Below, piece by piece: positions 1,189-50,014 of a stretch of 64,000 nt of DNA (positions are counted from its first letter, which is position 1; each line of letters begins with the position of its first letter). Origin of the DNA: Rhodosorus marinus CCMP1338 (Eukaryota; Plantae; Rhodophyta); NCBI GenBank assembly GCA_029953675.1, contig JAMWBK010000005.1:248001-312000 (forward strand), written 5' to 3'. Under the pieces are notes generated by a model. It was given only the letters and a program-made list of their open reading frames with translations. It had not been told where the DNA came from and did not search any database. Position numbers and translations under genes: made by a program.

Positions 1189-3399
1189 CTAGAGGTTTCT
1201 TTTCTTTGTCGGCGTTGGCAAAGGAGCTTTCCATTCCCAAACATCGCAAGGTACATTGTACACCTTTTTCGGCCCGCTCTTCAATATTCTAGTGTCATAG
1301 CTCATTTTCAACTCGACTAGAGCCCACAGCTTCGTTTTCATCGCTTGATTCTCCTTGTCTAAGAGATCGTCGCGCAAGTGAGTATCCACGATGAACGCCT
1401 GATTTGCGCGGCCATCGTCAAAAGCTATCCTCGCCTCTTGCAAGAGTTCGAGCGCCTGTGGGAACGCAAACGTTTCCTTTTCGTTAACACAAGGATTCGA
1501 CAACAAGTAGCAGTAGCCGTTCAGGCTTTCTGGCAAACACACCTCTTTGTAAATTTCGTCCACTCGCTTCCAGCGATAGCGCATAGTCGAGATCATTACG
1601 GTCATGGTCGTTACGACCACAATCGCAAGCACGAAGCACGCTACCCACAGCTTGTGATTCCACAAGAACATTCTGAAGGCGCACAGTAGATATTGTCGCG
1701 GGCTCATCGACTGATACAAAAGCTTGCGACAATCTGTGCAGTTGTCTGTTCCCTTCGTCGTGAAGCTGACGGACACGTCCGATAACGAGCTTACATATTG
1801 AAGGGCCTTCTCGAAAGCAACGCTGAATTTTTCAGAGCTCGCGTTCAACTGAATCCAATGACGAGTTGCGGGTTCAGCAAATAGCATCAGACAACGTAAG
1901 TCACAGCAACAACTGCCCAAGTTCTATTTATCCCCGGGCAGTTCATTGCAGCGCGTTAGCACGGATCGAATTCGTTTTCATTACCTTGGGGTTCCTCAGT
2001 TCCAGCTCCGCAATGAGCTCTTCGGACGTAAGCATGTCAGATTCCAGTTCACCGCATAGTTTCTTTCCAGCAGCGGTGTCTAGTATACTTTTGATGTCAC
2101 GAAGCAGGGCAGCAGCATGCACTTGTATTTCTCTGTCCTCAACACAACTCGCTCGCCTCGGCACGTATCCTTTATCACACGTCAACGCTCCATCCTTACA
2201 AGTGCCATGCTCGGGGCATGGTCTGCAGCGCTTTGCGAAAGGGCGTCCTGAGATGTCCGACCAGAAAATTTTCGTCTATTTCAGTACGCCAGGCGATTCA
2301 TCATCATGCGCAGAGCCGCACGACAGATCGTTGCTTTTCAAAGTCAACAACAAGCGCTGATAAGGAGGCGGTAGCTTACGCTCTCCTCCGTCACAAAAAG
2401 GAAGCCGTTCAAACCACATCCAAACCGAGATCAAACCCGCCACGAGAGCAAGGAGTACGGAAACTCCAATCACAGTCCTCAAAACCTTCCTGACGAACAG
2501 CTTCTTGGCCTGAGACCGTGAAGTTATGTCTACGTGCGATGAACGGGGATAAACAAAACCCACAACCAAGGAAGAGCGAAAACTATCAAGGTCAGCAACA
2601 AGCTTAGCATACCCCCACAATACCCAAGGATCTTGCTAGGGGCAGTCATACTTGGGTTTGCCTTGTCATCAGGTCTTGAAGAGCGCGCCGCTGATTTCCT
2701 CATTAGCTGGTGGTGAGCGTTTGCGAGAGCCACCAGTTCAGCTTTCTTTGCTCTGGGTTCGTACGGAATCATCAACTTGGATAAGTGCTGTTTCAACTCC
2801 TTGACCGTGGACTGATTGAAGTCCAGTTCCACTATAGTGCGCTCCTCCGGTTCTCCATCGGAGGACCAGTCTGAGACGAACTCTTCGCCAGAAGCGCCTG
2901 AAGGGGAGAGAACCTCCTCTTTGACTTCGGGCGACGAGATGCTTCCACGTCCGAAGTCCACTTGACGGCGAACCTTCTCAGGGGATTGGAAATCAGGAAC
3001 GATCTGAATCTCCTGCTTTTCTGGCGACCCCATTGATTTTTCTATCGTTCCTAGCAACCCCGGCTCTATCCAGACCGATAACCGTCGGCGTGATCGTGAT
3101 GTTCCAGACTTTGGACTTGGTGTCGTCGTATCAACTGAGCCCTTTTTCCCATCCTTGGATTTCTCGACCGACGATTGGAAAGGGTTTATTTCCCGTTCGG
3201 GGGTTCGCGCGCTTGGCCCACCTCTCCGCGTCAAGTCATAGTTCTCGCGGACCTCTAAGGCCGTTCTGAGCAAGTCCTTTTTAACCGGGCGTGGCGTTCG
3301 TCCTGTGGAAGTAATTTCCGACAAAGGAACTTCTTGTCGCTCGAGAAATTCTCTCAGCTCGGAGACGGTCATCTCCTGTATCTCCTGCACACTTTCCAT
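1189..3399 (-). CDS. Man1/Src1/Heh-like inner nuclear membrane protein (HeH/LEM-like motifs, two TM helices, MSC C-terminal domain); multi-exon
   Basis: ATG at 3399. HeH-like motifs MTVSELREFLERQEV and TVKELKQHLSKLMIPYEPRAKKAELVAL; TM1 VIGVSVLLALVAGLISVWMWF; luminal CRPCPEHGTCKDGALTCDKGY; TM2; MSC-type HLRDDLL...LWALVE...DVWEWK. Confidence 0.8.
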
Positions 3400-4138
3400 G
3401 ATACCGATGTCCAACGGCCGTCTCGGCGTAACAGTTGTGAAGAAGCCGCAACGTTGAGTCTCACAATGAGGCTAAAACGAAAAACTCTTCCTCCCTAACC
3501 TGCAGCTCGAGGGCCTACAAGAGGGTACTTGAGGCGAGCGCAAGAAACAGGATCAGCCGCAAAATACAGCTGAACCTGATATATGCTCCTCTCGACTGCA
3601 CGTCCTCTCAATTCAGCTCTTCCACAGCACTCTCGCCAGAATTGAGCAGTAACCTCTGCAACCCGGTACCGGCAAGAAACCCGGTCGACTTGGGTAGACA
3701 ATCGAGAATTTCCCCCGACAACAACCTATAAATCAGTAAATTTCCGGTACAACATCAACAGACTCCTGTTCAAGCACCCACACAAACCTCTAGGACTACC
3801 GTCATCCTCGTCCTCCTTAAGTCCGAAGAAGTCTCGCCAGCCTACCTACCATCATACCGGCGAGCTTTTTGAACATTGCGGGCTCGCGCGCTTCTTTTAA
3901 ATAGCTTTCAAGGAAAATTCTCAAAGATTTTCTTCGAATTAGTATTAAAAAACAAAGACAAAAGGAACCATTGGTTTCCAAAGAAAATTGCTCATCATTA
4001 ATTGGACTCTAAATTCAGATTCGACAGGTGGAGTAAAATAAGTTGGTAAACGATTACTTTATTTCTATGAAACTTGCAGCTTTCTTACAGTTCTGCTTAA
4101 CCCCCTCTTGGACGTGCTGTACGTCATCCATTGGCGTA

Positions 4139-12304: not shown

Positions 12305-12968
12305 TTAAAGCCTAAGCTTTTCAACTTTTTCGTCCGCATCATCAAGCTGAGACTCGTCTTCAATCACTACGTCGCAGACTTCTGGGATACGATTTTGCAG
12401 ATATAGGGAAACACGGGCCAGCTGTTATAGAGAGACGGAACACCGTACAGGAGGATCCTTTGCGATCAGTAAGAACATCCGAGTTCGCTTTGTGTCGGCA
12501 GCTATCTAGCGCTTACCACGTCACTTTTTTTATGCCAGAATCTCCCGGTAAGCCTGAGAACCACGGTCACGCCGTCGAGCTCGGCAAGGCTTACATCCCT
12601 ATTCACAATGGTGAAGAGCACGATCTTTAGAACTACGGAGGTTCAAGAAGAACGCACGTTGAAGCAAGGAGGTCAGTCGCTTCCTTTGCTCTGGTGATAA
12701 CAAAAAAATAAAAACCCTACCCTGTGATCCCAACTTCTCGATTCTCTTCAGAGTTCCCAAAAATAGTCCCGAGCTTAGTTTTCGCTTCTTCCAGGACGAT
12801 GTTAACATTTTCTTCCGATAAATAGGTCGTGTCATCCTGGCACCGCACCACAACTCTCCGGCAACCCCGTGCCCTACTAGTTCGCAACAAACGAATTGAA
12901 GCCGGACTGCTTTGAGTTGCGTTCAGCAATCCACCACCGACAAAGCTATTGATAAAACCAACATCCAT
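12305..12968 (-). CDS. Plastid-targeted NFU/NifU-C-fold protein without the CxxC motif; 3 exons
   Basis: Transit peptide MDVGFINS...VVRC. Spliced core LSEENVNIVLEEAK...GITG|DVSLAELDGVTVVLRLTGRFWHKKSDV|LARVSLYLQNRIPEVCDVVIEDESQLDD. Confidence 0.8.
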
Positions 12969-23278: not shown

Positions 23279-24531
23279 CCATTGCGCTTCTTTCACTTCA
23301 CTGGCGCCTGCACTGTTTTTGAAACTAGCTCATTCATTCTGAATTCATTCTGAATTTGTTGTGGCAATTTCTCGGCCCGTCCGCTTTACCTAGGCCTCAA
23401 GCGTATACAACAGTCTTTGCTTCGTTTCCTCTACTGCCATGTCCGAGCTTTCTTATTCAGACGCCTGAGCAGAAGGGACTAGTGGCGGAAACGACGACAG
23501 AGTTGGAAAAGTAGGGAGAGTCGGTAATGGAGTTGCAGAATATGAACAGATAGCAGATTGCGCCCCACCGTCATCAATGTGAATACGCGGACCACTAAAC
23601 AGTAAATTAACTTAAGATTTTAACAGCTCTTGCGCACAGAGCGGGTGAGGGACTATGACAAGCTTAAAAGCTGGATTCATATTCCACGCCGTGATTCCGG
23701 CAGAAACCAATCATGGAGTTTTTCAACTCGTTCACTTTGATGCGTTTCAAGGGGTATGAACACTTTGTGTAGACTACACATCGATGGTGATTCCTATGGT
23801 CTACCTGTCATTGCTCCTGCGGGACTTGAAACATTCCAAGGGCGCATCAAATTCACCTCTTGTGATGACGGCTGCACAGCAGTGCGACACAAACAGAAAG
23901 TGACCGGGAACAACTTCTGCTAAAGACAAATCTGACACAATCCCACTCCTCATGGTTTTCATGACTCCCGAAAAACCCCGTGACAGCATTGAAAAAGTGT
24001 GTTTGGCAATACCAAAACCCGGAGCTTCATTCACGGTCAAGGTCAACTTCCCGCGAGCCCCTGAGACTCAATTCCCATACCTATTTCTACGAGGCATCCT
24101 TCCCAGATCCACATCATCCCTGAGGCTTCAAGATGTTGGTGGTCAACATTGACCAGCCTCTTCCTTATCGGTCCTTATCATTAGAGAAAGGACTCTATTG
24201 ATACCTAAAATGTCAATGTAGGCTACCCCGCTTCCAATCCAAAAGCGTGTCTGATATGATCAATTCGATAGAAACGAGATTACATCGGCGTAATTTGTTT
24301 TGGGAAACAAAAGATCTTGGGGAGATATTTTTAAGCATCCTCTCTAAGCTTTTTGATCCAAAGATCAGTTAGAGTTATTGGACGACGTCTCTGGATCGGG
24401 GTCTCGTATCCACGCTCTTTGGTGGATAGCGAGAGCGGAGTAGGGCTGAAGCTATCGCAGCGGAGTAGGATTGGACGAGGGACGGTGGTTTGGGATTGGA
24501 CTGACTCGGCAGCAGTCTGGTTGATATCAGG

Positions 24532-26520
24532 ATGGATGTTGGGTTCATTCTGAGCGTTGGGAAATCCACGGGGGTCGCGAGTCGTTCGGGACAAGCGAAA
24601 TGCTGCAGAAGACGAGGGTTGATTATGAGGGCTGAGGAGTCCGCAGCTGACATGAACAAGGAGCACGGGCCGCGTGGAAAGAAGGGGAAGAAGAAGAAGA
24701 AGAAGAGTCAGGCGGCTGAGGCGGAGCCCGTAACAGAGAAGCAGACGAAGCCCGTATCTGAGGAGAAAAAGGAGGCTGTCGCAGTTGAGAAGGAAGTGGA
24801 GCCCGTGGCTATTGAAAAGGAGGAACCCGTGGCTGAGGGAAGGGAGCCCGTGACCGAGGAAAACGAGGATCCCGTAGCTGAGGAGGAGAAAGAGCCCATA
24901 GCTGAGGAGAAGAAGGAACCCGTGGCTGAGGGAAAGGAGCCCGTGGCCGAGGAAAACGAGGATCCCGTAGCTGAGGAGGAGAAAGAGCCCATAGCTGAGG
25001 AGAAGAAGGAGCCAGAGGCCGAGGAGAAGAAGGAGCCCGTCGCTGAGGAGAAGGAGGTGGAGCCCGTCGCTGAGGAGAAGGAGGTGGAGCCCGTCGCTGA
25101 GGAGAAGGAGGTGGAGCCCGTCGCTGAGGAGAAGGAGGTGGAGCCCGTCGCTGAGGAGAAGAAAGAGGAGCCCATCGCTGAGGAGAAGGAGGTGGAGCCC
25201 GTCGCTGAGGAGAAGGAGCCCGTCGCCGAGGAGAAGGAGGTGGAGCCCGTCGCTGAGGAGAAGAAAGTGGAGCCCGTCGCTGAGGAGAAGAAAGTTGAGC
25301 CCGTCGCTGAGGAGAAGAAGGAGCCCGTCGCTGAGGAGAAGGAGGTGGAGCCCGTCGCTGAGGAGAAGAAAGTGGAGCCCGTCGCTGAGGAGAAGAAAGT
25401 GGAGCCCGTCGCTGAGGAGAAGAAAGTGGAGCCCATCGCTGAGGAGAAGAAAGTGGAGCCCGTCGCTGAGGAGAAGAAAGTGGAGCCCGTCGCTGAGGAG
25501 AAGAAAGTGGAGCCCGTCGCTGAGGAGAAGAAGGAGCCCGTAGAGGTTGAAAGGGAGGATCCCGTAGCTGAGGAGAAGAAGGAGCCCGTTGCGGTTGAAA
25601 GGGAGGATCCCGTAGCTGAGGAGAAGAAGGAACCCATCACCGTTGAGAGGAAGGAGCCCGTCGCCGTTGAGAAGAAGGAGCCCGTCGCTCAGAAAGAGGA
25701 GGCCGTGGCTTGGCAGATTAGCCAACCCGTTAGTTTCGAGACTAGTGAAATCGCGTCTGAGATGCAGGACCCCGTCTCTGAGAAGCACGACAGGGCTGCT
25801 GAGCGGGTCGAGCCGGATGTTATTACGTTGAGGTGAGCGTTTGTCATTCTGTCATCTGAGATAATGAGAGTGTTCTCTGACATCGCTGTGTATACACCAG
25901 ACCTTCGTACAAGCTGCAGTATGGAATCCTGGGTACGGCGGTTTGGCTGAAGGTGCTCGGAATCGACTCTGCGGCGATTCCCGTCGCTCTGCTGGGAGCT
26001 TTTCTGTTCTATCAAGTGCGTCGTTCAGAGCGCCCTCCCGCCTGCAGAGGAACTTTCAGTCCATTTTTTCTTCAATACTAACCATGACTTTGCTCATTAT
26101 GATCTGCTGCTCTCGCCCAGGCTAAAGCGGTTAAGTTCTCCTTCTCGCGCTCGAGCTTGATAGTTTCCAAACCTCAAAAGAAGGGCCCAGATGTGGTGGT
26201 TGGTGAATGGTAAGAGGTTTTCAAGGACAACCACCGTGATCCTCTGTCTAGTCGTATCAGATCTGAGTTTGAATATACATGCTTTTCTCCTTAGGGACTA
26301 TCTGACATGGTCAAACTGGGAAATGTGGTGGCCCAAAGTACCCATCTTGGTCTATTTTAAGGAAATCGGAAGCATCCATTTCTTTCCTATCATCTTCAAC
26401 CCTGATGAACTACTGTACTGCCTACAAACTCGCACGGGCCTGCCAAAGGTATCCTACCCAAGCAAAGACCTCCCCCCGGGCGCTTACAATAAGCAGGGAG
26501 ATAAGTCTCTCGATGAATGA
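24532..26520 (+). CDS. Plastid-targeted DUF3119-family membrane protein with a long EPVAEEK repeat region; 4 exons
   Basis: Exon 1 is 24532-25832, intron 25833-25900, exon 2 is 25901-26015, exon 3 starts at 26121, last exon ends at 26520. Spliced C-terminus TLRPSYKLQYGILG...LLGAFLFYQ|AKAVKFSF...W|DYLTWSNWEMWWPKVPILVYFKEIGSIHFFPIIF matches the DUF3119 pattern as I recall it. Confidence 0.85.
24724..25710 (+). repeat. Coding minisatellite, about 40 units of 21-27 nt (E/D-P-V/I-A-E-E-K-K/E-V)
   Basis: Core unit GAGCCCGTCGCTGAGGAGAAG(AAA/GAG)GTG. All units keep the frame. Higher-order 31-aa (x2) and 16-aa (x2) blocks flank a homogeneous core. Confidence 0.97.
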
Positions 26521-28082: not shown

Positions 28083-29408
28083 TTACACTAGTTCTACAAA
28101 TGCTTGTCCACTCCCTCCTTGAACACCGGTCACTTCCGTGCTGACCGTTGACTTCGTCGTGCGACTCGCTGAGCTCTTGTTCGAGGTTTCCTGCTTCGAG
28201 AGTGCGTAGGCACCCAACGAACCAGGATCCGCGACGAATTGACCCTTCACCAAGTTAACAACGGTCATCACAGTCACGTACAGAAAGGCTAAACAAGCTG
28301 CAATAATAAAAATGGTGGCAATCACTTCCCAGAAGAGGTTGTCCATTCCGAACGCAACTGCTGTCGCCGAAGCGGCAGCAGTTGAGGTAGGGAAAATCAC
28401 CGCCCAAAATGCCACGGCAAAAGGCTGTCTGGCGAATGACCTTGTAATCCTAATCACCATCAGGTAGAAGTAAAAGTCGATGAAAAAGAAGAACGATACG
28501 ACTGCGTCGTGGGGATTCTCAGAGCCAGAAGCAACGTTAATGAGCAGCCAAGCCACGGACGCCGCTGCCGGTGGAGCAATAAACAGCGCCAACGTAGGGT
28601 TCGGATTCTCGTGCATCGATTTGAAAGATTCCGAGAGTCTTAGGAACAACGCTACCACAACAATTATCCAGAACAGCAGCCCCACAAAGAACATCAGCTG
28701 GGGACCTTCAGTCTCACCCAGCGACGCTCCGTACGAGGCAACTAGAAAATTGCCGATTATGGACATCTGCTGAGTCGGGGATACCCACTTCAGCGAGAAA
28801 TTCTTGCCGAAAAGCCAATCCCCATAAACATATAAAGAAAGCCCAAGCTGGTAAGCCAGCAAACTATAGAACACGATCTCGCTCAGCGTATCGTTCGTTA
28901 GAAATCTAGGGGCATTCGAGGCTAGTCCCGTTGCAACAATCAGCGGCGAAAAGAAGAAGTTAACCAGCCGATTGCAAAAGAAGTCCCTCTTCAAGAGAGA
29001 CAAACTCATATAGGCTCGCGCAATGTACGCGAGCGTAGTCAGCGCAAACACTGTCAGCGTAATGAACCAAAACACCCAGGAAAGCTGAACCGGTACATCA
29101 AACCAACCAAAATTCCCGCTCACACTCTTCCACATTCCTGTGAACGCGCTCAACCCAAGCGAAGGACCATAATATGCGATGTTGAGTTGCGCTAGTGCAA
29201 GCTTCCAATTGCTTTGCTCCCCTAGTACATCATTCAATTCCTGGCTCAAAGGCGGCAAGTTCTTACAACCAGCGCAGGTGCACCTGCCATACATTGCCTG
29301 ATAGTCCGCCTGACCTGAAACGCCGTGTTCGGGTCTGATCCTCTCGCTCTGCTCGTCCGAGTCGGCGTCACCGGACCATCTTCTATTTGGAACCGTATCG
29401 TTGCCCAT
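28083..29408 (-). CDS. SLAC1/TDT (TehA-like) anion channel or transporter; intronless
   Basis: About 10 hydrophobic helices. Family motifs VNFFFSPLI, LFIAPPAAASVAW and FAVAFWAVIFP (the WxYTFP-like gate motif). Confidence 0.9.
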   Translation of the reverse strand: MGNDTVPNRRWSGDADSDEQSERIRPEHGVSGQADYQAMYGRCTCAGCKNLPPLSQELNDVLGEQSNWKLALAQLNIAYYGPSLGLSAFTGMWKSVSGNFGWFDVPVQLSWVFWFITLTVFALTTLAYIARAYMSLSLLKRDFFCNRLVNFFFSPLIVATGLASNAPRFLTNDTLSEIVFYSLLAYQLGLSLYVYGDWLFGKNFSLKWVSPTQQMSIIGNFLVASYGASLGETEGPQLMFFVGLLFWIIVVVALFLRLSESFKSMHENPNPTLALFIAPPAAASVAWLLINVASGSENPHDAVVSFFFFIDFYFYLMVIRITRSFARQPFAVAFWAVIFPTSTAAASATAVAFGMDNLFWEVIATIFIIAACLAFLYVTVMTVVNLVKGQFVADPGSLGAYALSKQETSNKSSASRTTKSTVSTEVTGVQGGSGQAFVELV

Positions 29409-31416
29409 ACCAATCCACAAATTTCACTAGCCAGGGCACTCCACACAAAGCTGCTAAGCATCCATCGTCGACCTTCGTTCCCCCAAACCTCTACAAAAGG
29501 GATCCCTCTTATCCGTTGTCCAGCAAGCAACCGAAGTTTCTCCAAATCTACAACAACAGGACGTACAATAAGGGGGATGCAGACTGCTCGCACGTTCTAC
29601 GCCGCGCGCCCTTCTGCTATTCCTCTTTCTCTTGTCTCACTTTCTGCGACCCAGAACTAGCCGAAACGAGCAACTAGCTTGCGGCTATAGGGCTGAGCAA
29701 CCGCAGGATTTCCAAACTTTTAAGGCAGCAATAAGTATCCTAGCTCCCGATACATAGAAATAGAAAAACCCTCCTTACTTCAAGGGGTCCTAAGCCAATA
29801 GATTCCTCACTGGATGACATCTCCTCCCAGACCTCAATGCCAAACGATGGTCGCTCAATTGACAAACGGTCCCAACACACCACCCCAAACGCCTACCAGG
29901 GCGCACTGAATTCTAAAGAGGAGAAAACGTGACCCTTCAATGTGTACCGCTCCGCAGCAACAAAAAAAAACAACTAGAAGCAGAAAAACTTGTGCCGTAT
30001 ACCCGAATCTGGTCCCCGGTTCTCGTCAGAAGGTTCTTTTTAACCAACATCCCCCCTCTTCCCCCCCCAATGAAGGCGCACGCTTGTCCATCCCTTCCGC
30101 TCTACACCTTCATATTCTCTTTCTCTACAGGAGAGAAACTCCGTTTAACCAGAGGAAGACTGTATCCCGAAGGACTCCACAGCTCACACACAACCAAACC
30201 CCACCATCCCACCCCTTCCCTCCCACGACAATATCGTTTTTCCCTAAGTCGCTCGTGGACCGCCCCGATCATAGCTGTTCCACCCCTCCCGTAGTACCCG
30301 CCCAAATTGTAAAACATGAACGCCTGTAGTTGCTAGATTCAGAAACACATTTGGAACTTCAGTGTGCGCCACCCCTTGGGAAAAATATATCAGACCACCC
30401 CGTCTCTCCTCCAACCCCCCTTCGTATGGAGTTGTATCTGTATTCCAGGGTTTCTCTCAAAACTGTACAGTAAAAAAGTTTCCGCATTTCAATAGATTGC
30501 TAACCACCGATTATTTTCTGCTTTTTTTGGACGTTTTACCCCCCTGCTTCAGGGTGGATTCGTACGTTAGTGCAGTCTCGTACCAAACAGAAAGAGCTTC
30601 TCCTGGGGGGTAAGCTTTCATCTAGAACCGATTCACTGCGGAAACATGCGAGGCTTGGGAGGACATAAAACAACAGAAATCCCCGACAATCCTTAACCCG
30701 CTGAGCACAAAAAATAGTTTTTCGGGAAAGTATTACCCCCCATAAAGAATATGTAGGTCCCTGTTCAATATCGATAGGGGGTACAAGAACAGAATAGTAG
30801 ATTAGTAGTTTCTTGTACAGGATGTGGCTTAATTGATTTAGAACAAGGAGAAACCTGTACGGCTTTCCACATGACCATCAAATTTTACCGCAGAACAGCT
30901 GCCCATGAAAATATTTCATTAATTAAGACCTTGTCAGCAGCTGAACTATCCCAATCCACAGTATTTCTACTTCGATATTTTTACTACGATGAAACCTGTA
31001 CTTGGACTAAGTTTTTTAATGAATATTCCTACATTCATGCACAGGAGAAATTACTCCAGAATTTTGACCAATAGCTCAACAGAAAATAGTTTCTTCCTGG
31101 TCAATCCATTAAATTTAATTATCAAAAAGTATCTGCGATATCATTCCATTGCTCGACACTTGGAGGTCTCCGTAGGCCAAAACTCGGAACAAAAGAACAA
31201 AGTCTTTTTTTCCACCCAAGTCGTCTTCTGGATTCCAATCCGTTTTTAATACAGAATCGTCCGACAAGAAGGGTAAAATAATTCGTTGTATGGAATGCGG
31301 CTGCTAGTAGTTAGTAGTGCTCAGTTGTACATGGTGAAAATGTGGCTTTTAGGGGTTTTTAGATTAAAAACTGTGAAGCCCTCGGGCTAGGATTTGTCTT
31401 TGGGGGCAAAGAACTG

Positions 31417-38067: not shown

Positions 38068-40129
<2,062 letters not shown>

Positions 40130-43516: not shown

Positions 43517-44799
43517 AGACGGGAATGCTTGGCGAGAAGGAGCAAGTCTCGCACGTCTGGGATCTTCCGCGGGCAGGAGAGATTCCCCGTACTCCCAGTC
43601 GGTTTGATGACGAGCAAACCAGTGCTGAACTTTTTGCCTCGCAAACCGGAAACCGTTTGCGCCCTATACCATCGATCCCTGGAGGACGCCCACCGGCTAA
43701 GCTTCTGCTCAGACCTCGAAGGCGGATGCGAGCTCAATCTGAGTTCAACTTGCATGCCCTAGCCTTCTTGCTTGTCCACCTTTTCTATGTCCGCAGTCCA
43801 ATGCACGGGGCAGACTTTGTTCTGCCTAGGGCGGTGGTCTGCGGAAAGCATCTACCGAGCTTTCCCGCAAGGTGGCCAGCAGTGAAAAAAACAGGAAGCG
43901 TATCAACAAGAGAATTCAATTTGTTTTGAAAAAGTGACATATTCGATCAGCAAACAAATCGCAAGCTTGCACGTGTTCGACAAACCATCTGGCGGCAAAT
44001 GATTTGACAACAGTCCTGTCGTTACCAATAGTATCGTTCCATTAGCGTAAAATTTTTCACTAGCTCATGTCCCGTCATACCTGCTTTTTTTTCTTCTCGA
44101 AAATAAATGGCTTTAGTGGTCGTCAAGTACATCCTTTCCCAAACTACCATAAAAAAGGACGCAGGGATGCTCACAGAAGCCTCAGAAAGGCAGGTGGTAT
44201 TCCAAAATCATCCAAACAAGAAAATATCCACATCAACGTTCTATTTTATATTAATAATAGAGAATTATTCACCAATGGAGATTGGTTTGCGCTTAAAAAA
44301 GGGTTAATTTTCATCTTTTGGACTATTGAATTGGATGGCAGAAATCCGTTGGAGGATTCCCTCTCAGACGAACACTAACCAGCCCAAATTTCTTGCAACT
44401 AGAAACGAATTAAAATTTTATATGCTTTTTACATGTATTTTTTGCGGGCGGGTTAGCAGTCATTGGGTCTGTCCGGGTTCTGCAGAAAGCTGGCTTTCTG
44501 GTCTGGTTTGAGGAATCCAAATTGGAATGGAGTGGGACACGACTATTGAGTGTCAACAGGTGAGTGAGGGAGTTTCATCTTATAGGGCGGTGGAGTGAGT
44601 GGGGAAGGATGGAAGAGGATGGGAGTTCAATGAGAATAGATAGGAGGGATTCTGTTTCATCTTCTACGGTTTGAGAATTAGTTACAATGAGCTATTTGTA
44701 TTCCGTGAAGTAGGGTGTAGTGTGGTGTGCTCACTGCCATTCTATACTGTTGTTTATCGTTTGTTCTCGGCAGAAAGGACGCTTTTGGTTTGTGTGGAG

Positions 44800-46992
44800 A
44801 TGGTGTCGGTAACTCTTATTCTGCTCGGTTTTTCAGCGGTTGGGCTTTGTTACGTGCTATGGTGTATTATTCAGACAAAGATGGAGTCTCGTCGGGATCT
44901 GAAGATTCCCAAGTCCTTCAAGTCTTCCAAAGAGACTGAAGCTGAAAAGGCGATTCGAGAAATGAAGGAATTTTGTCCTGAAGAGGATGGACGTACTCAG
45001 AACGTACTAGTAATATATGCGACAGAGTATGGGTTCTCGAAGGAGGTAGCTCGGAAGGTAGCCGAGGTGTTGGCGGACAGAATACCGGATGTCGCCCCGA
45101 GAATAATCAACGCTGTCCACTACAATTTTATTGATTTCTCCAAGGAGCAAATGTGCCTAGTATGTTGCTCAACAACAGGCGACGGGGTAATTCCGACGGA
45201 TTCGAAGGAATTTTATGATTTAATGAGTACCGAGCAGGACCGTTCTGCCCCCAACCTCAAATTTTCAGTATGCGCACTCGGCGACCGCGGATACCCGCAT
45301 TTCTGCCGCGGAGGCCACCTGTTCCATTCCGTTTTAGAATCATATACTGGTTCTAAACCTTTTGTCGAAATGAAGGAAATAGACCAAGAGGATTGGGAGG
45401 AGATTGAGGAGTGGGTTGAGCAGGTCGCAGGGCAGGTCGAAAGCATGTCCCTGGAAGAAGCTGATTCCGACTACCTTGAAGAAGCCATCAAGGAGGGACT
45501 TCACGATAGCGGAGACTCGAACTACTCTCTCGCGAACCCGCTGCACGCTCCTCTCCAGTGTAAACGTCCGTTGACAAAGGTAGAGTCGAGAGACGACAAG
45601 GAAACAATTCATGTAGAGTTTGATCTTTCAGGGAGTGGCTTGAAGTATACTTGTGGGGACGCACTTGGAATAATTGCATCCAACTGCCCAGATGAAGTCA
45701 ACGCACTTATCGAAGCTCTCAAGTGCGACCCGCAGACTCTGGTCAAAGCACCCGGTAATGACTTGTATCTGCCATTTGAGGAAATAGCCCTCAACTCTCT
45801 CGATCTGAAGGCGGTCAAGCCCGATTTTGTGAGTGCTCTTGCAAGCCGGACATATTCTAAAACGGCCTCATATCTGACAAACCTGGTTTTGGATTCTCTG
45901 AAAAGGTTGCTGCCGTGCTGGGGGCGATTACAAGCGAGGACGACAGGGTCTACGCGACAAAAATTTTCGGCAAAAGTACTCTGAGCGGAGATGTACATCA
46001 CTTGAAAGCCAACCCGGCCTTTCATAGCTTCGCCTCTGCGCGGTTCATGGTTGACGTCTTAAACAGTTTCCCTTCGGCAAAGGTTACTCCGAAAATTGTC
46101 GTTGAACACGCGAGGGCTTTGATTCCAAGGTAAGATCTCGGCCCACATACTGCCGCGCCGGCTGCGCGCCACAGGTACTTCCTGTGTCGGTCTGGCTGAC
46201 TGGTCTTGCACACATGGGTTATTCCGTCTTGCTCCTTTCGGCTTCAGGTTTTATTCGATATCCTCCAGCCCGAATCGAGACGAGAATGTTGTGAGCATTG
46301 CCGCGGCCGTTGTTCGCTACGAGCTCTTCGACGTCCCTAGAAGCGGTGTCGCGACTACCTACTTGGCAGATCGAGTCGACGAGCTTGATCTAGTAAAACT
46401 GTATATTCAGAAGAACAACAATTTCCGGCTGCCCACCGATGACGAAAAGCCAATCATAATGATTGGCGCTGGTACTGGAGTGGCTCCATATGTTGCCTTC
46501 CTCCAGGACAGGGAGATTCGGAGGGCGACTGGAGAGGCTGTCCTGTTCTTTGGATGTCGACACGAGGACAAGGACTTCTTGTACAAAACCGAGCTTCAGC
46601 AGTGGTCGGATGAAGGTATCGTAGAACTGTACACAGCTTTTTCGCGGGATACAGAGAAGAAAGTGTATATTCAACATCGAATGGAAGAACATGGAGACAG
46701 AGTCTGGAAGCTCATTGACTCCGGCGCCCACTTGTACGTTTGTGGGGATGCAAACCAAATGGCCAAGGATGTACATCAGGCCCTACGACGGTAGGTCCTT
46801 GCCAAATACCCAAACTGTCGACGTGAACGGAACGCACTACTAACTTGGCTTGTTTCAAACGCCGTCCTTGTTTGGTTCGGGTCCGACAGAATTATCAGCA
46901 CTGGAGCAGCGATCAGTGATAAGGAGGCGGATGCATATCTCGAGGATTTGGAGAAGAAGAGTCGATATCAAAGAGACGTCTGGCTTTCCTAG
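44800..46992 (+). CDS. Diflavin (FMN/FAD/NADPH) oxidoreductase with an N-terminal membrane anchor; 4 exons
   Basis: TM anchor VTLILLGFSAVGLCYVLWCII; flavodoxin YATEYGFSKEVA, STTGDG, ALGDRGYPHFC; RFYSISSS; IMIGAGTGVAP, LFFGCR, AFSR, YVCGDA; ends YQRDVWLS*. Confidence 0.92.
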
Positions 46993-48787: not shown

Positions 48788-50014
48788 TCATTGGCTCACA
48801 AGGTCACAGTCAGTAAGTTTTCGCTTAAATACAGTAGAGAGAGTGCTCGTTGATGTCGGATGCCACAAGTCAATCTGCGCCTCGAGGCCGGATCTCTTGC
48901 ATATAGGAGAAGACCTTCGCTTGTGCTCAAAACTTCCAACAATGTCGTCGCTGCTCAACGAGTTTCTCATGGGAATGCACAGAGAGCGCAGTCTAGGAGC
49001 TAGAACGTCTTCCTCCGCAGGTCTTGGACCCGAAAGCCATTTGTGCTCCAAAACATCACTCGCCGTTGCTCTGGTCAACGGGTTCTTGGTAAGCAGGCTG
49101 GATACTAGATGCTTTGCTTCGGGGCTGATATCCGCCCAAAAAGGATCGTCGAATAGACGGCCATTCGACAAGTCCTCGTCAGATGGAAACTTTCCAGAAA
49201 GCATGACGACGATCATTACCCCTAGGCTATACATGTCTACTGGTGTTCCAACCTTTGGGTTTCGACCAATCTCTCCAACAAGTTCCGGTGCGATATAGCC
49301 TCGAGTGCCAAGAACCGAACGCTTCTTTGCATCAATAGTCCTCCATGAGCAATATCCAAAGTCCCCCTGTGAGAGGTCATCGCGGCTGCTCGTTGACCGC
49401 CCCTTCCTCATCGGCAGGAACTCCGATATTCCAAAGTCGCATAGGTGCACTTTCAACTCTCTCGCAGACTCCTTCACAAGGACGTTCTCCAACTTCACAT
49501 CAAAATGTACGATACCCCGCTCGTGGAGGTAAGCTAGAGCCGAGCTCACTTGACTAACAACTGCTCGAGTACGCTGCTCTGATATGCGACGTGAGCCTCG
49601 CGACAGGTACTCAAATAGATCACCTCCAGATACAAATTCCATTACAATATCCAGGTTTGCGTTATCCGATGACTTGATTACGCTTTCAGCTTTAACAATA
49701 CTGGGATGGTTTACTCTGCGCAGGATTTCAACCTCAACATTCCGCTCGCAAGATATCCTTTTCACTGCCACCATTCTCCCGGATAGTTTTTCCTTTGCAA
49801 GCAATACCATGTCCATTCCAGTCCCCAAAACGTCTTCAAAGTCGAAAAACTCTTCCGTAACTCCGTCAACCACACAACAAGACTGTGCACCCTGTTCCGC
49901 CAGCATCCACTCTCTGTTCATTTCTGGAGGCAAGTCCTCCCAGAGCTCAAGCTCCTCCTCAGAGAGCCCGGAACAGATGCTCACATCCATACGCGGACAG
50001 CTAACCTCATCCAT
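48788..50014 (-). CDS. CAMK-like Ser/Thr protein kinase; intronless
   Basis: VAVKRI, VNHPSIV, MEFVSGGDLFEYL, HFDVKLEN, LCDFG, GTRGYIAPE, DMYSLGV, WADISPEAKHLVSSLL, HKW. Confidence 0.92.
   Translation of the reverse strand: MDEVSCPRMDVSICSGLSEEELELWEDLPPEMNREWMLAEQGAQSCCVVDGVTEEFFDFEDVLGTGMDMVLLAKEKLSGRMVAVKRISCERNVEVEILRRVNHPSIVKAESVIKSSDNANLDIVMEFVSGGDLFEYLSRGSRRISEQRTRAVVSQVSSALAYLHERGIVHFDVKLENVLVKESARELKVHLCDFGISEFLPMRKGRSTSSRDDLSQGDFGYCSWRTIDAKKRSVLGTRGYIAPELVGEIGRNPKVGTPVDMYSLGVMIVVMLSGKFPSDEDLSNGRLFDDPFWADISPEAKHLVSSLLTKNPLTRATASDVLEHKWLSGPRPAEEDVLAPRLRSLCIPMRNSLSSDDIVGSFEHKRRSSPICKRSGLEAQIDLWHPTSTSTLSTVFKRKLTDCDLVSQ

Follow-up and report, generated by a model that had tools for sequence, protein, structure and literature searches.

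In a 64,000-nucleotide stretch of the genome of the red alga Rhodosorus marinus CCMP1338 (NCBI GenBank assembly GCA_029953675.1, contig JAMWBK010000005.1, positions 248,001 to 312,000 of the forward strand; this whole stretch is hereafter the window, and coordinates refer to it), a four-exon gene on the plus strand (24532-26520) encodes a member of the DUF3119 family (PF11317) in which an in-frame minisatellite lies between a presumed plastid transit peptide and the conserved domain. With modest confidence, we favor the reading that this is a plastid-targeted DUF3119 protein whose disordered tail serves as a non-specific membrane brush, while the conserved job resides in the DUF3119 module. 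In this lineage, a 21/24/27-nucleotide minisatellite has expanded in frame at the mature N-terminus, adding an acidic, PEVK-like tail of ~400 residues. The tail, in this proposal disordered, would project from the same side of the membrane as the PH-like domain, probably the stromal side, and would most likely act non-specifically, as a membrane-anchored entropic or electrostatic brush or spacer and as a weak cation (counter-ion) sink; the DUF3119 module, in turn, would do a conserved and possibly membrane-lipid-related job. The gene had been singled out in an initial annotation, made by a model from the letters of the window, as the best candidate there for an undescribed system. That description was overstated: the protein is an unusual variant of a known, uncharacterized family and not a new system, carrying a lineage-specific low-complexity expansion. 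Such expansions are common in eukaryotic proteins.

The coordinates and anatomy given for the gene in the initial annotation, including the MDVGFI start and the KKGKKKKKK patch, were correct. An in-frame TGA lies 30 nucleotides 5' of the ATG at 24532, which is the first start after that TGA, and the open reading frame (ORF) from this ATG comprises 434 codons and ends just beyond a GTGAGC donor at 25833. Exon 1 (24532-25832, plus strand; amino acids 1-433 and two nucleotides of codon 434) carries the transit peptide, a poly-Lys patch, the repeat array, a linker and the first DUF3119 residues. It is followed by intron 1 (25833-25900; 68 nucleotides, GT..AG, phase 2), exon 2 (25901-26015), intron 2 (26016-26120; 105 nucleotides, GT..AG), exon 3 (26121-26209), intron 3 (26210-26294; 85 nucleotides, GT..AG) and exon 4 (26295-26520), all on the same strand. 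By an AlphaFold2 (AF2) model and hydropathy, exon 2 encodes a predicted helical hairpin membrane anchor (amino acids ~438-452 and 456-475) and exon 3 the end of its second helix with the first strands of the PH-like domain, while exon 4 contributes the conserved core NWEMWWPKVPILVYFKEIGSIHFFPIIF, a C-terminal helix, a short tail and the stop codon TGA at 26518-26520. Splicing of these exons yields a coding sequence of 1731 nucleotides (576 codons plus stop).

The spliced product matches the Pfam DUF3119 profile over positions 1-112 of 114 with an E-value of 2.6e-31 (108.8 bits, against a cut-off of 25). As this near-full match is possible only with these junctions, the splice model is correct, including the 25832/25901 junction, which had been predicted exactly. 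DUF3119 was the sole match when the 576-amino-acid product was scanned against Pfam at E<=0.1, and a scan of the domain against NCBIfam matched no family. If intron 1 were left unspliced, read-through would meet a TGA at 25834-25836. Translation of the DUF3119 exons from a separate start was ruled out: 5' of exon 2, no in-frame ATG was found ahead of a stop at 25878, and these exons therefore depend on exon 1. A search for other GTRAGY donors inside exon 1 found none apart from that at 25833. The presence of three introns fits the intron density of the published long-read, chromosome-level assembly of R. marinus CCMP1338, which comprises 31.2 Mb, 8392 genes and 24,821 introns (PMC10250338).

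The array itself (24724-25704, plus strand) was delimited with Tandem Repeats Finder (TRF) and a table of its units. It consists of 37 units of the form [ED]P[VI]AEEK(K/E)V over 327 amino acids, so that the long Glu/Lys/Pro/Val tract of about 330 residues originally described is borne out, while the original count of about 40 repeats was slightly too high. Units are 7-9 amino acids long, the commonest being EPVAEEKKV, EPVAEEKEV and EPVAEEKK, and the 36 regular ones measure 27 (17 units), 24 (16 units) or 21 nucleotides (three units), all multiples of three. TRF returned a period of 27 with 26-30 copies (score 757-828), and this was the only tandem array in the window with a score of at least 80. 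Runs of identical 27-mers make up the center of the array; both ends are diverged and contain higher-order repeats of 93 and 96 nucleotides. Because the central 27-mers are identical at the DNA level, the pattern indicates that the central part was amplified recently.

Differences from the consensus codons are distributed 13:13:45 over codon positions 1, 2 and 3. With 25 synonymous versus 31 non-synonymous copies, and ~4.3 synonymous and ~16.7 non-synonymous sites, the ratio of non-synonymous to synonymous change per site (pN/pS) comes to a rough 0.3-0.45. The plus-strand frame runs without a stop from the transit peptide to the conserved 'RVEPDVITLRPSY', and it is the sole frame to join the transit peptide to the start of the domain; together with the third-position bias, this argues that the array is translated, kept in frame and under moderate purifying constraint. 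Two minus-strand ORFs, rich in Leu, Ser and Gly, also run through the array, at 24331-25788 (485 amino acids) and 24708-25640 (310 amino acids). Both were rejected as genes and are regarded as by-products of the repeat, since it is the plus-strand frame that shows the third-position bias and that alone connects the transit peptide with DUF3119.

Downstream of the array, a unique acidic linker (WQISQPVSFETSEIASEMQDPVSEKHDRAAE) leads into the conserved domain start RVEPDVITLR (together 25705-25832, plus strand), and this region aligns with 'RVEEPENVTLRPSY' of the red alga Bangiopsis. The native junction, 'E[KR]VEP[VD]', is similar to a repeat unit, and slippage at this site may have given rise to the array. 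Metagenomes were scanned for DNA coding EPVAEEK(K/E)VEPVAEEK, with no matches. When the presequence and tail were used as the query, only unrelated low-complexity bacterial linkers were retrieved (from FKBP, TerY-type VWA, HU and other proteins); these were rejected as homologues, the likeness being compositional, and none of them carries DUF3119 or is an orthologue from the Marine Microbial Eukaryote Transcriptome Sequencing Project (MMETSP). Exact look-ups of the window's proteins in a 15-billion collection, and in encoding contigs, returned zero matches.

Upstream of the array, the first 33 amino acids (MDVGFILSVGKSTGVASRSGQAKCCRRRGLIMR; 24532-24630, plus strand) form the presumed plastid transit peptide, as judged from composition and alignment and with an approximate boundary. 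This segment starts with MDVGFI, has Phe at position 5 and contains seven Lys or Arg residues versus a single acidic residue (Asp). By alignment, it ends where the Bangiopsis presequence (MAAFV...VVMRVEE, 'AVCSVRNRVVMRVEE') does. The same MDVGFI start had been reported for an NFU-like gene of the window, and a second copy is indeed present at 12968 on the minus strand; the back-translated pattern has 2 matches versus 0.03 expected. A presequence of the MDVGFI type thus looks like a pattern common to plastid proteins of this alga. In the NFU-like gene (12369-12968, minus strand), MDVGFI is followed by a Ser/Gly/Arg-rich presequence ending in ...CRRVVVRCQDD, which may be compared with ...CCRRRGLIMRAEE in the DUF3119 protein. 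Read directly from the sequence, the poly-Lys patch KKGKKKKKK occupies amino acids 50-58 (24679-24705, plus strand). It is coded almost purely by AAG, and hence is an (AAG)n microsatellite, and it places a basic block directly 5' of the acidic array.

The place of this protein in its family was examined with a HMMER search of the DUF3119 part against 1.84 billion representative proteins (E<=1e-3), which found 251 members. The best 150 of the 251 are 59-369 amino acids long, compared with 576 here, and no E/K repeat was found in the 18 representatives that were read, which included all those above ~280 amino acids among the 150 listed. The description of other DUF3119 proteins in the initial annotation, as small and free of any such tract, thereby held up. 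The R. marinus protein shares with the family a full-length domain match, the motifs G..L..Q, NWE.WWP, P.L.YFKE and HFFP, and the arrangement of a hairpin with a beta domain; with the eukaryotic members it also shares a presumed plastid-type presequence. It differs in its length, as members are typically, though not by definition, ~120-250 amino acids long and free of long low-complexity regions, and in its ~395 amino acids of poly-Lys patch, acidic repeat and linker, which none of the other members examined possesses.

The nearest complete orthologue is that of Bangiopsis sp. CCMP1999 (P0025/P0293; 161/177 amino acids), with 56% identity over the whole mature domain. Here, the presequence '...AVCSVRNRVVMRVEE' continues directly into 'PENVTLRPSY', the transit peptide being fused to the domain. 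In the R. marinus protein, ~395 residues intervene between 'AKCCRRRGLIMRAEE' (amino acids 22-36) and 'RVEPDVITLRPSY' (amino acids ~424-436). The orthologue of Porphyridium purpureum (230 amino acids) is free of repeats as well, so that in both of these related algae, where the repeat number had been proposed as a check, the repeat is absent. Because Bangiopsis joins its presequence straight to the domain and Porphyridium lacks the repeats, the alignment indicates that the ~395-amino-acid tract was inserted specifically in this lineage, at the mature N-terminus and between transit peptide and domain.

The closest match of all, P0001, is an MMETSP transcript, presumably from Rhodosorus, with a 109-amino-acid ORF. 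It corresponds to a window ORF (26191-26520) whose start lies in exon 3, out of frame, and which runs through intron 3 into exon 4, and the two are 91% identical (58 of 58 residues in the domain part and ~74% in the intron-derived part). As P0001 is an MMETSP transcript of this locus, the DUF3119 locus is transcribed in a relative, presumably a Rhodosorus, with intron 3 retained; the transcript does not cover the array. A metagenome scan with the exon-4 peptide recovered only distant relatives, at 52% identity or less.

Consistent with the disordered polyampholyte originally proposed, the tail is strongly charged and has a simple composition. Across the repeat (amino acids 64-393), 125 of the 330 residues are acidic and 57 basic, giving a fraction of charged residues of 0.55, a net charge per residue of -0.21, a kappa (charge mixing) of 0.09 and an isoelectric point (pI) of 4.4, with Pro, Glu, Val and Lys together accounting for 81% of residues. 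The mature N-terminal tail (amino acids 34-433) has a net charge of about -69, and within its ~400 residues there are one Trp, two aromatic residues and no Cys; AEEKK occurs 16 times, AEEKE eight times and VEEKK not at all. A single-sequence AF2 model of amino acids 1-435 contained no secondary structure, with predicted local distance difference test (pLDDT) values of 27-40. These properties are consistent with an intrinsically disordered, well charge-mixed acidic polyampholyte, for which polymer-scaling estimates put the radius of gyration at ~7-9 nm, the end-to-end distance at ~17-22 nm and the contour length at ~144 nm.

In composition, the tail falls into the same class as the PEVK region of titin, an entropic spring in which Pro, Glu, Val and Lys abound: its 81% content of these residues compares with the at least ~70% that marks PEVK sequences, and both are built from short tandem repeats with mixed charges and are predicted to be unstructured. 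By this analogy, the tail would be expected to behave as an extensible random coil. The likeness does not extend to homology (neither PPAK/PEVK nor any other Pfam family matched the tail), and the R. marinus units are 7-9 amino acids long, compared with ~28 in titin. The R. marinus tail is also more acidic, is not known to have a load-bearing partner and would have just one of its ends fixed to a plastid membrane.

An AF2 model of the conserved module, built from a 63-sequence alignment (model ma249a0333ded), had a pLDDT of 88 and a predicted template modeling score of 0.78. The two helices of the hairpin (amino acids ~438-452 and ~456-475) have pLDDT above 94 throughout and are followed by a six- to seven-strand sandwich, in which six strands are at least three residues long, and a C-terminal helix. 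When the module was compared with the Protein Data Bank (PDB) using Foldseek, the top matches were almost all PH/PTB/FERM-F3 domains, including the bacterial PH structures 3dcx, 3hsa and 3b77 (TM-scores 0.3-0.57); a sequence-profile search of the PDB with the domain gave no meaningful match. DUF3119 is thus modeled as a membrane hairpin of two helices that leads into a PH-like beta-sandwich and then a C-terminal helix, an assignment that is new here. The bacterial bPH/YdbT-like proteins represented by these three structures have, like the model, two N-terminal membrane helices, a PH-like sandwich and a C-terminal helix. They differ in that the resemblance is at the level of the fold only (Foldseek E-values of 0.04-0.24, 10-13% identity), with no cross-match in Pfam.

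Across cyanobacterial and algal DUF3119 members, 13 columns are invariant, among them G466, Q472, W510, W514, P518, E525, H530 and F531. The loop between the hairpin helices consists of ~4 uncharged residues and, family-wide, Lys or Arg is found on both flanks of the hairpin. Because the loop is short and uncharged and both flanks are basic, the N-terminal tail and the PH-like domain should lie on the same side of the membrane, and by the positive-inside rule this shared side is probably cytoplasmic or stromal.

The conserved role of the module was approached through its bacterial gene neighborhood. A scan of one genome per prokaryotic species with a five-sequence alignment confirmed 557 DUF3119 loci, and among the best 80 of these every named record is cyanobacterial. 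Neighbors were counted around the 63 best tblastn matches, out of those 80, that had full flanks, a sample tilted to Nostocales and Leptolyngbyaceae and also including Microcoleus, Moorena, Cyanothece, Xenococcaceae, Lusitaniella and Synechococcales. In 57 of the 63 loci, a gene for an MlaE permease (PF02405), the bacterial counterpart of plant TGD1, ends ~100-130 nucleotides upstream of DUF3119. DUF3086 (PF11285) starts ~100 nucleotides downstream in all 63, and the glycerol-3-phosphate acyltransferase PlsY (PF02660) comes after it in 56. All three are on the same strand as DUF3119, giving the order MlaE-DUF3119-DUF3086-PlsY (for example, L001:3020-6491), and SppA and chorismate mutase are encoded upstream of the cluster on the other strand. 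This neighborhood suggests a role of the DUF3119 family in membrane-lipid transport or biogenesis, one that the modeled PH-like, membrane-proximal domain would suit. Searches of the literature on DUF3119, PF11317 and DUF3086 found nothing functional. The metagenomic abundance of DUF3119 has been reported to correlate with that of MinC_C (PMC3597751), and no MinC-like gene was present among the conserved neighbor clusters of the 63 loci. In one of the family representatives, P0100 (243 amino acids), the N-terminal portion resembles DUF3086 (…PDYYGPVWKFRRTFESIHADRINDWFFTQGGRG…) and the C-terminal portion is DUF3119; either the two neighboring genes have fused naturally, or assembly or gene calling has produced a chimera.

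Several points weigh against a DUF3119 protein that carries its tail as a non-specific brush. A repeat holds several frames open by construction, which makes an open frame by itself weak evidence, and the translation of the array is argued from statistics of its nucleotide sequence alone. Single-sequence AF2 is a poor test of disorder, as the real domain also scored low by it, and the role of a brush or spacer is argued from composition. The Foldseek E-values for the module are just 0.01-0.3, the choice between a stromal and a lumenal or intermembrane orientation depends on a weak positive-inside signal, and the synteny, drawn from matches biased to Nostocales and Leptolyngbyaceae, is guilt by association. 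Finally, because close relatives manage without it, the tail is not essential to the function of the family and is possibly near-neutral.

This last point leads to the main rival, in which the tail is a near-neutral by-product of replication slippage or unequal exchange, the protein works like a short DUF3119 and the copy number drifts between strains. We consider this possible, though on the unlikely side. It draws on the absence of the tail from the Bangiopsis and Porphyridium orthologues and from all other family sequences read, on the recent expansion indicated by central units identical at the DNA level, on the position of the array at a mature N-terminus, where extensions are readily tolerated, and on the junction motif from which the array may have been seeded. 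Against these stand the third-position bias of change in the flanking units, where most swaps are conservative (E/D, V/I, K/R) and the rough pN/pS is as given above; these suggest that the peptide has been under some selection, if only to avoid frameshifts, stops and shifts in composition. In addition, a membrane protein is unlikely to carry a net charge of -69 with no physical consequence. The codon-level constraint thus counts mildly against near-neutral expansion.

Improbable, in our judgment, is the idea that the tail is a low-affinity, high-capacity Ca2+/Mg2+ buffer at a plastid membrane, in the manner of PCaP1/PCaP2 (DREPP) or calsequestrin. The abundance of acidic residues would suit such a role, and the AEEKK and AEEKE motifs resemble VEEKK, a Ca2+-binding motif reported for MDP25/PCaP1 (PMC6471457); like PCaP1 and PCaP2, the R. 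marinus protein would be membrane-associated, Glu/Lys-rich and repetitive. However, the analogy, already drawn in the initial annotation, proved weak. VEEKK itself is missing from the tail, no DREPP/PCaP match was found in Pfam at E<=0.1, and the N-terminus is MDVGF in place of the MG start needed for myristoylation. PCaP1 and PCaP2 are proteins of the plasma membrane, whereas the R. marinus protein is presumably plastid-targeted with a transmembrane hairpin as its anchor. The acidic residues of the tail are moreover mostly paired with Lys, as its low kappa reflects, which lowers cation affinity, and nothing in these properties sets specific binding apart from the counter-ion uptake expected of acidic polymers in general.

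We attach a similarly small likelihood to a more ambitious version of the brush, in which a ~400-residue charged tail would be an adaptation specific to Rhodosorus that sets the spacing between membranes, organizes the interface between the thylakoid or envelope and the stalked pyrenoid, or gates a lipid-handling DUF3119/TGD-type machine. If true, it would be a plastid counterpart of the PEVK or neurofilament-sidearm spacers, and would offer a natural handle on the role of an uncharacterized family that extends from cyanobacteria to plants.

A gene-model or assembly artefact, in which the array is mis-sized or is spliced out by an unrecognized intron to leave a mature protein that is a normal short DUF3119, appears very unlikely. 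It is helped by the several frames that repeats keep open by construction and by the lack of a transcript across the array, the sole related one (P0001) having an ORF that covers exon 4 and a retained intron. These considerations are countered by a third-position bias in exactly the frame that links transit peptide to domain, by indels that are all multiples of three, by the absence from exon 1 of any GTRAGY donor besides that at 25833, in a gene whose three real introns span just 68-105 nucleotides, and by the lack of an independent start for the DUF3119 exons. For R. marinus, a long-read assembly at chromosome level is available (PMC10250338), and an array of 1 kb can be assembled accurately from such data.

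Highly doubtful, finally, is a multivalent tether that would join thylakoids either with phycobilisomes or with the pyrenoid's Rubisco matrix, a proposal of the initial annotation that the tail's composition does not support: R. marinus does have a prominent stalked pyrenoid, is figured among the algae with a polysaccharide-bounded pyrenoid in a review that names no red-algal Rubisco linker (PMC13655443), and combines a membrane anchor with a long, repetitive, predicted-disordered region, but the known green-algal and diatom linkers use recurring aromatic or basic stickers, the strongly acidic tail (pI 4.4) has one Trp, two aromatics in 400 residues and no recurring sticker-like motif, and Bangiopsis and Porphyridium have phycobilisomes and no tail. 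The same contrast holds for the pyrenoid proteins EPYC1, PYCO1, CsLinker and RBMP1/2, which are likewise disordered, repetitive and plastid-located (the RBMPs being membrane-anchored as well) and in which Rubisco-binding stickers recur (PMC13655443).

Other genes are recognizable in the window. ORFs on the minus strand at 1189-3414 match the Man1-Src1p C-terminal domain and, at a weak, sub-threshold level, HeH/LEM, which suggests an inner-nuclear-membrane protein. Further ORFs encode a SLAC1-family anion channel (28083-29420, minus strand), a Ser/Thr protein kinase (48788-50014, minus strand) and the C-terminal part of a second protein kinase domain (39519-40115, plus strand). A diflavin NADPH oxidoreductase (44671-45984, plus strand) is 86-88% identical to its two best matches, both MMETSP-derived and one of them labeled Rhodosorus marinus MMETSP0315 (taxid 101924); the next red-algal matches have at most 50% identity. 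These values place the window in the Rhodosorus lineage (Stylonematophyceae) and set it apart from both MMETSP sources.

Under the reading that we favor, of a conserved DUF3119 module with a non-specific, brush-like extension, the tail shows how, in a single genus, a coding minisatellite can equip a conserved membrane protein of an organelle with a large disordered domain. It would be useful for the study of how disordered regions arise and are tolerated, and possibly as a strain marker. Of greater importance are the PH-like fold and the MlaE-DUF3119-DUF3086-PlsY synteny, as they make the role of a widely conserved domain testable. DUF3119 has been kept from cyanobacteria to plants without an assigned function, and the hypothesis that it serves membrane lipids is now a concrete one.

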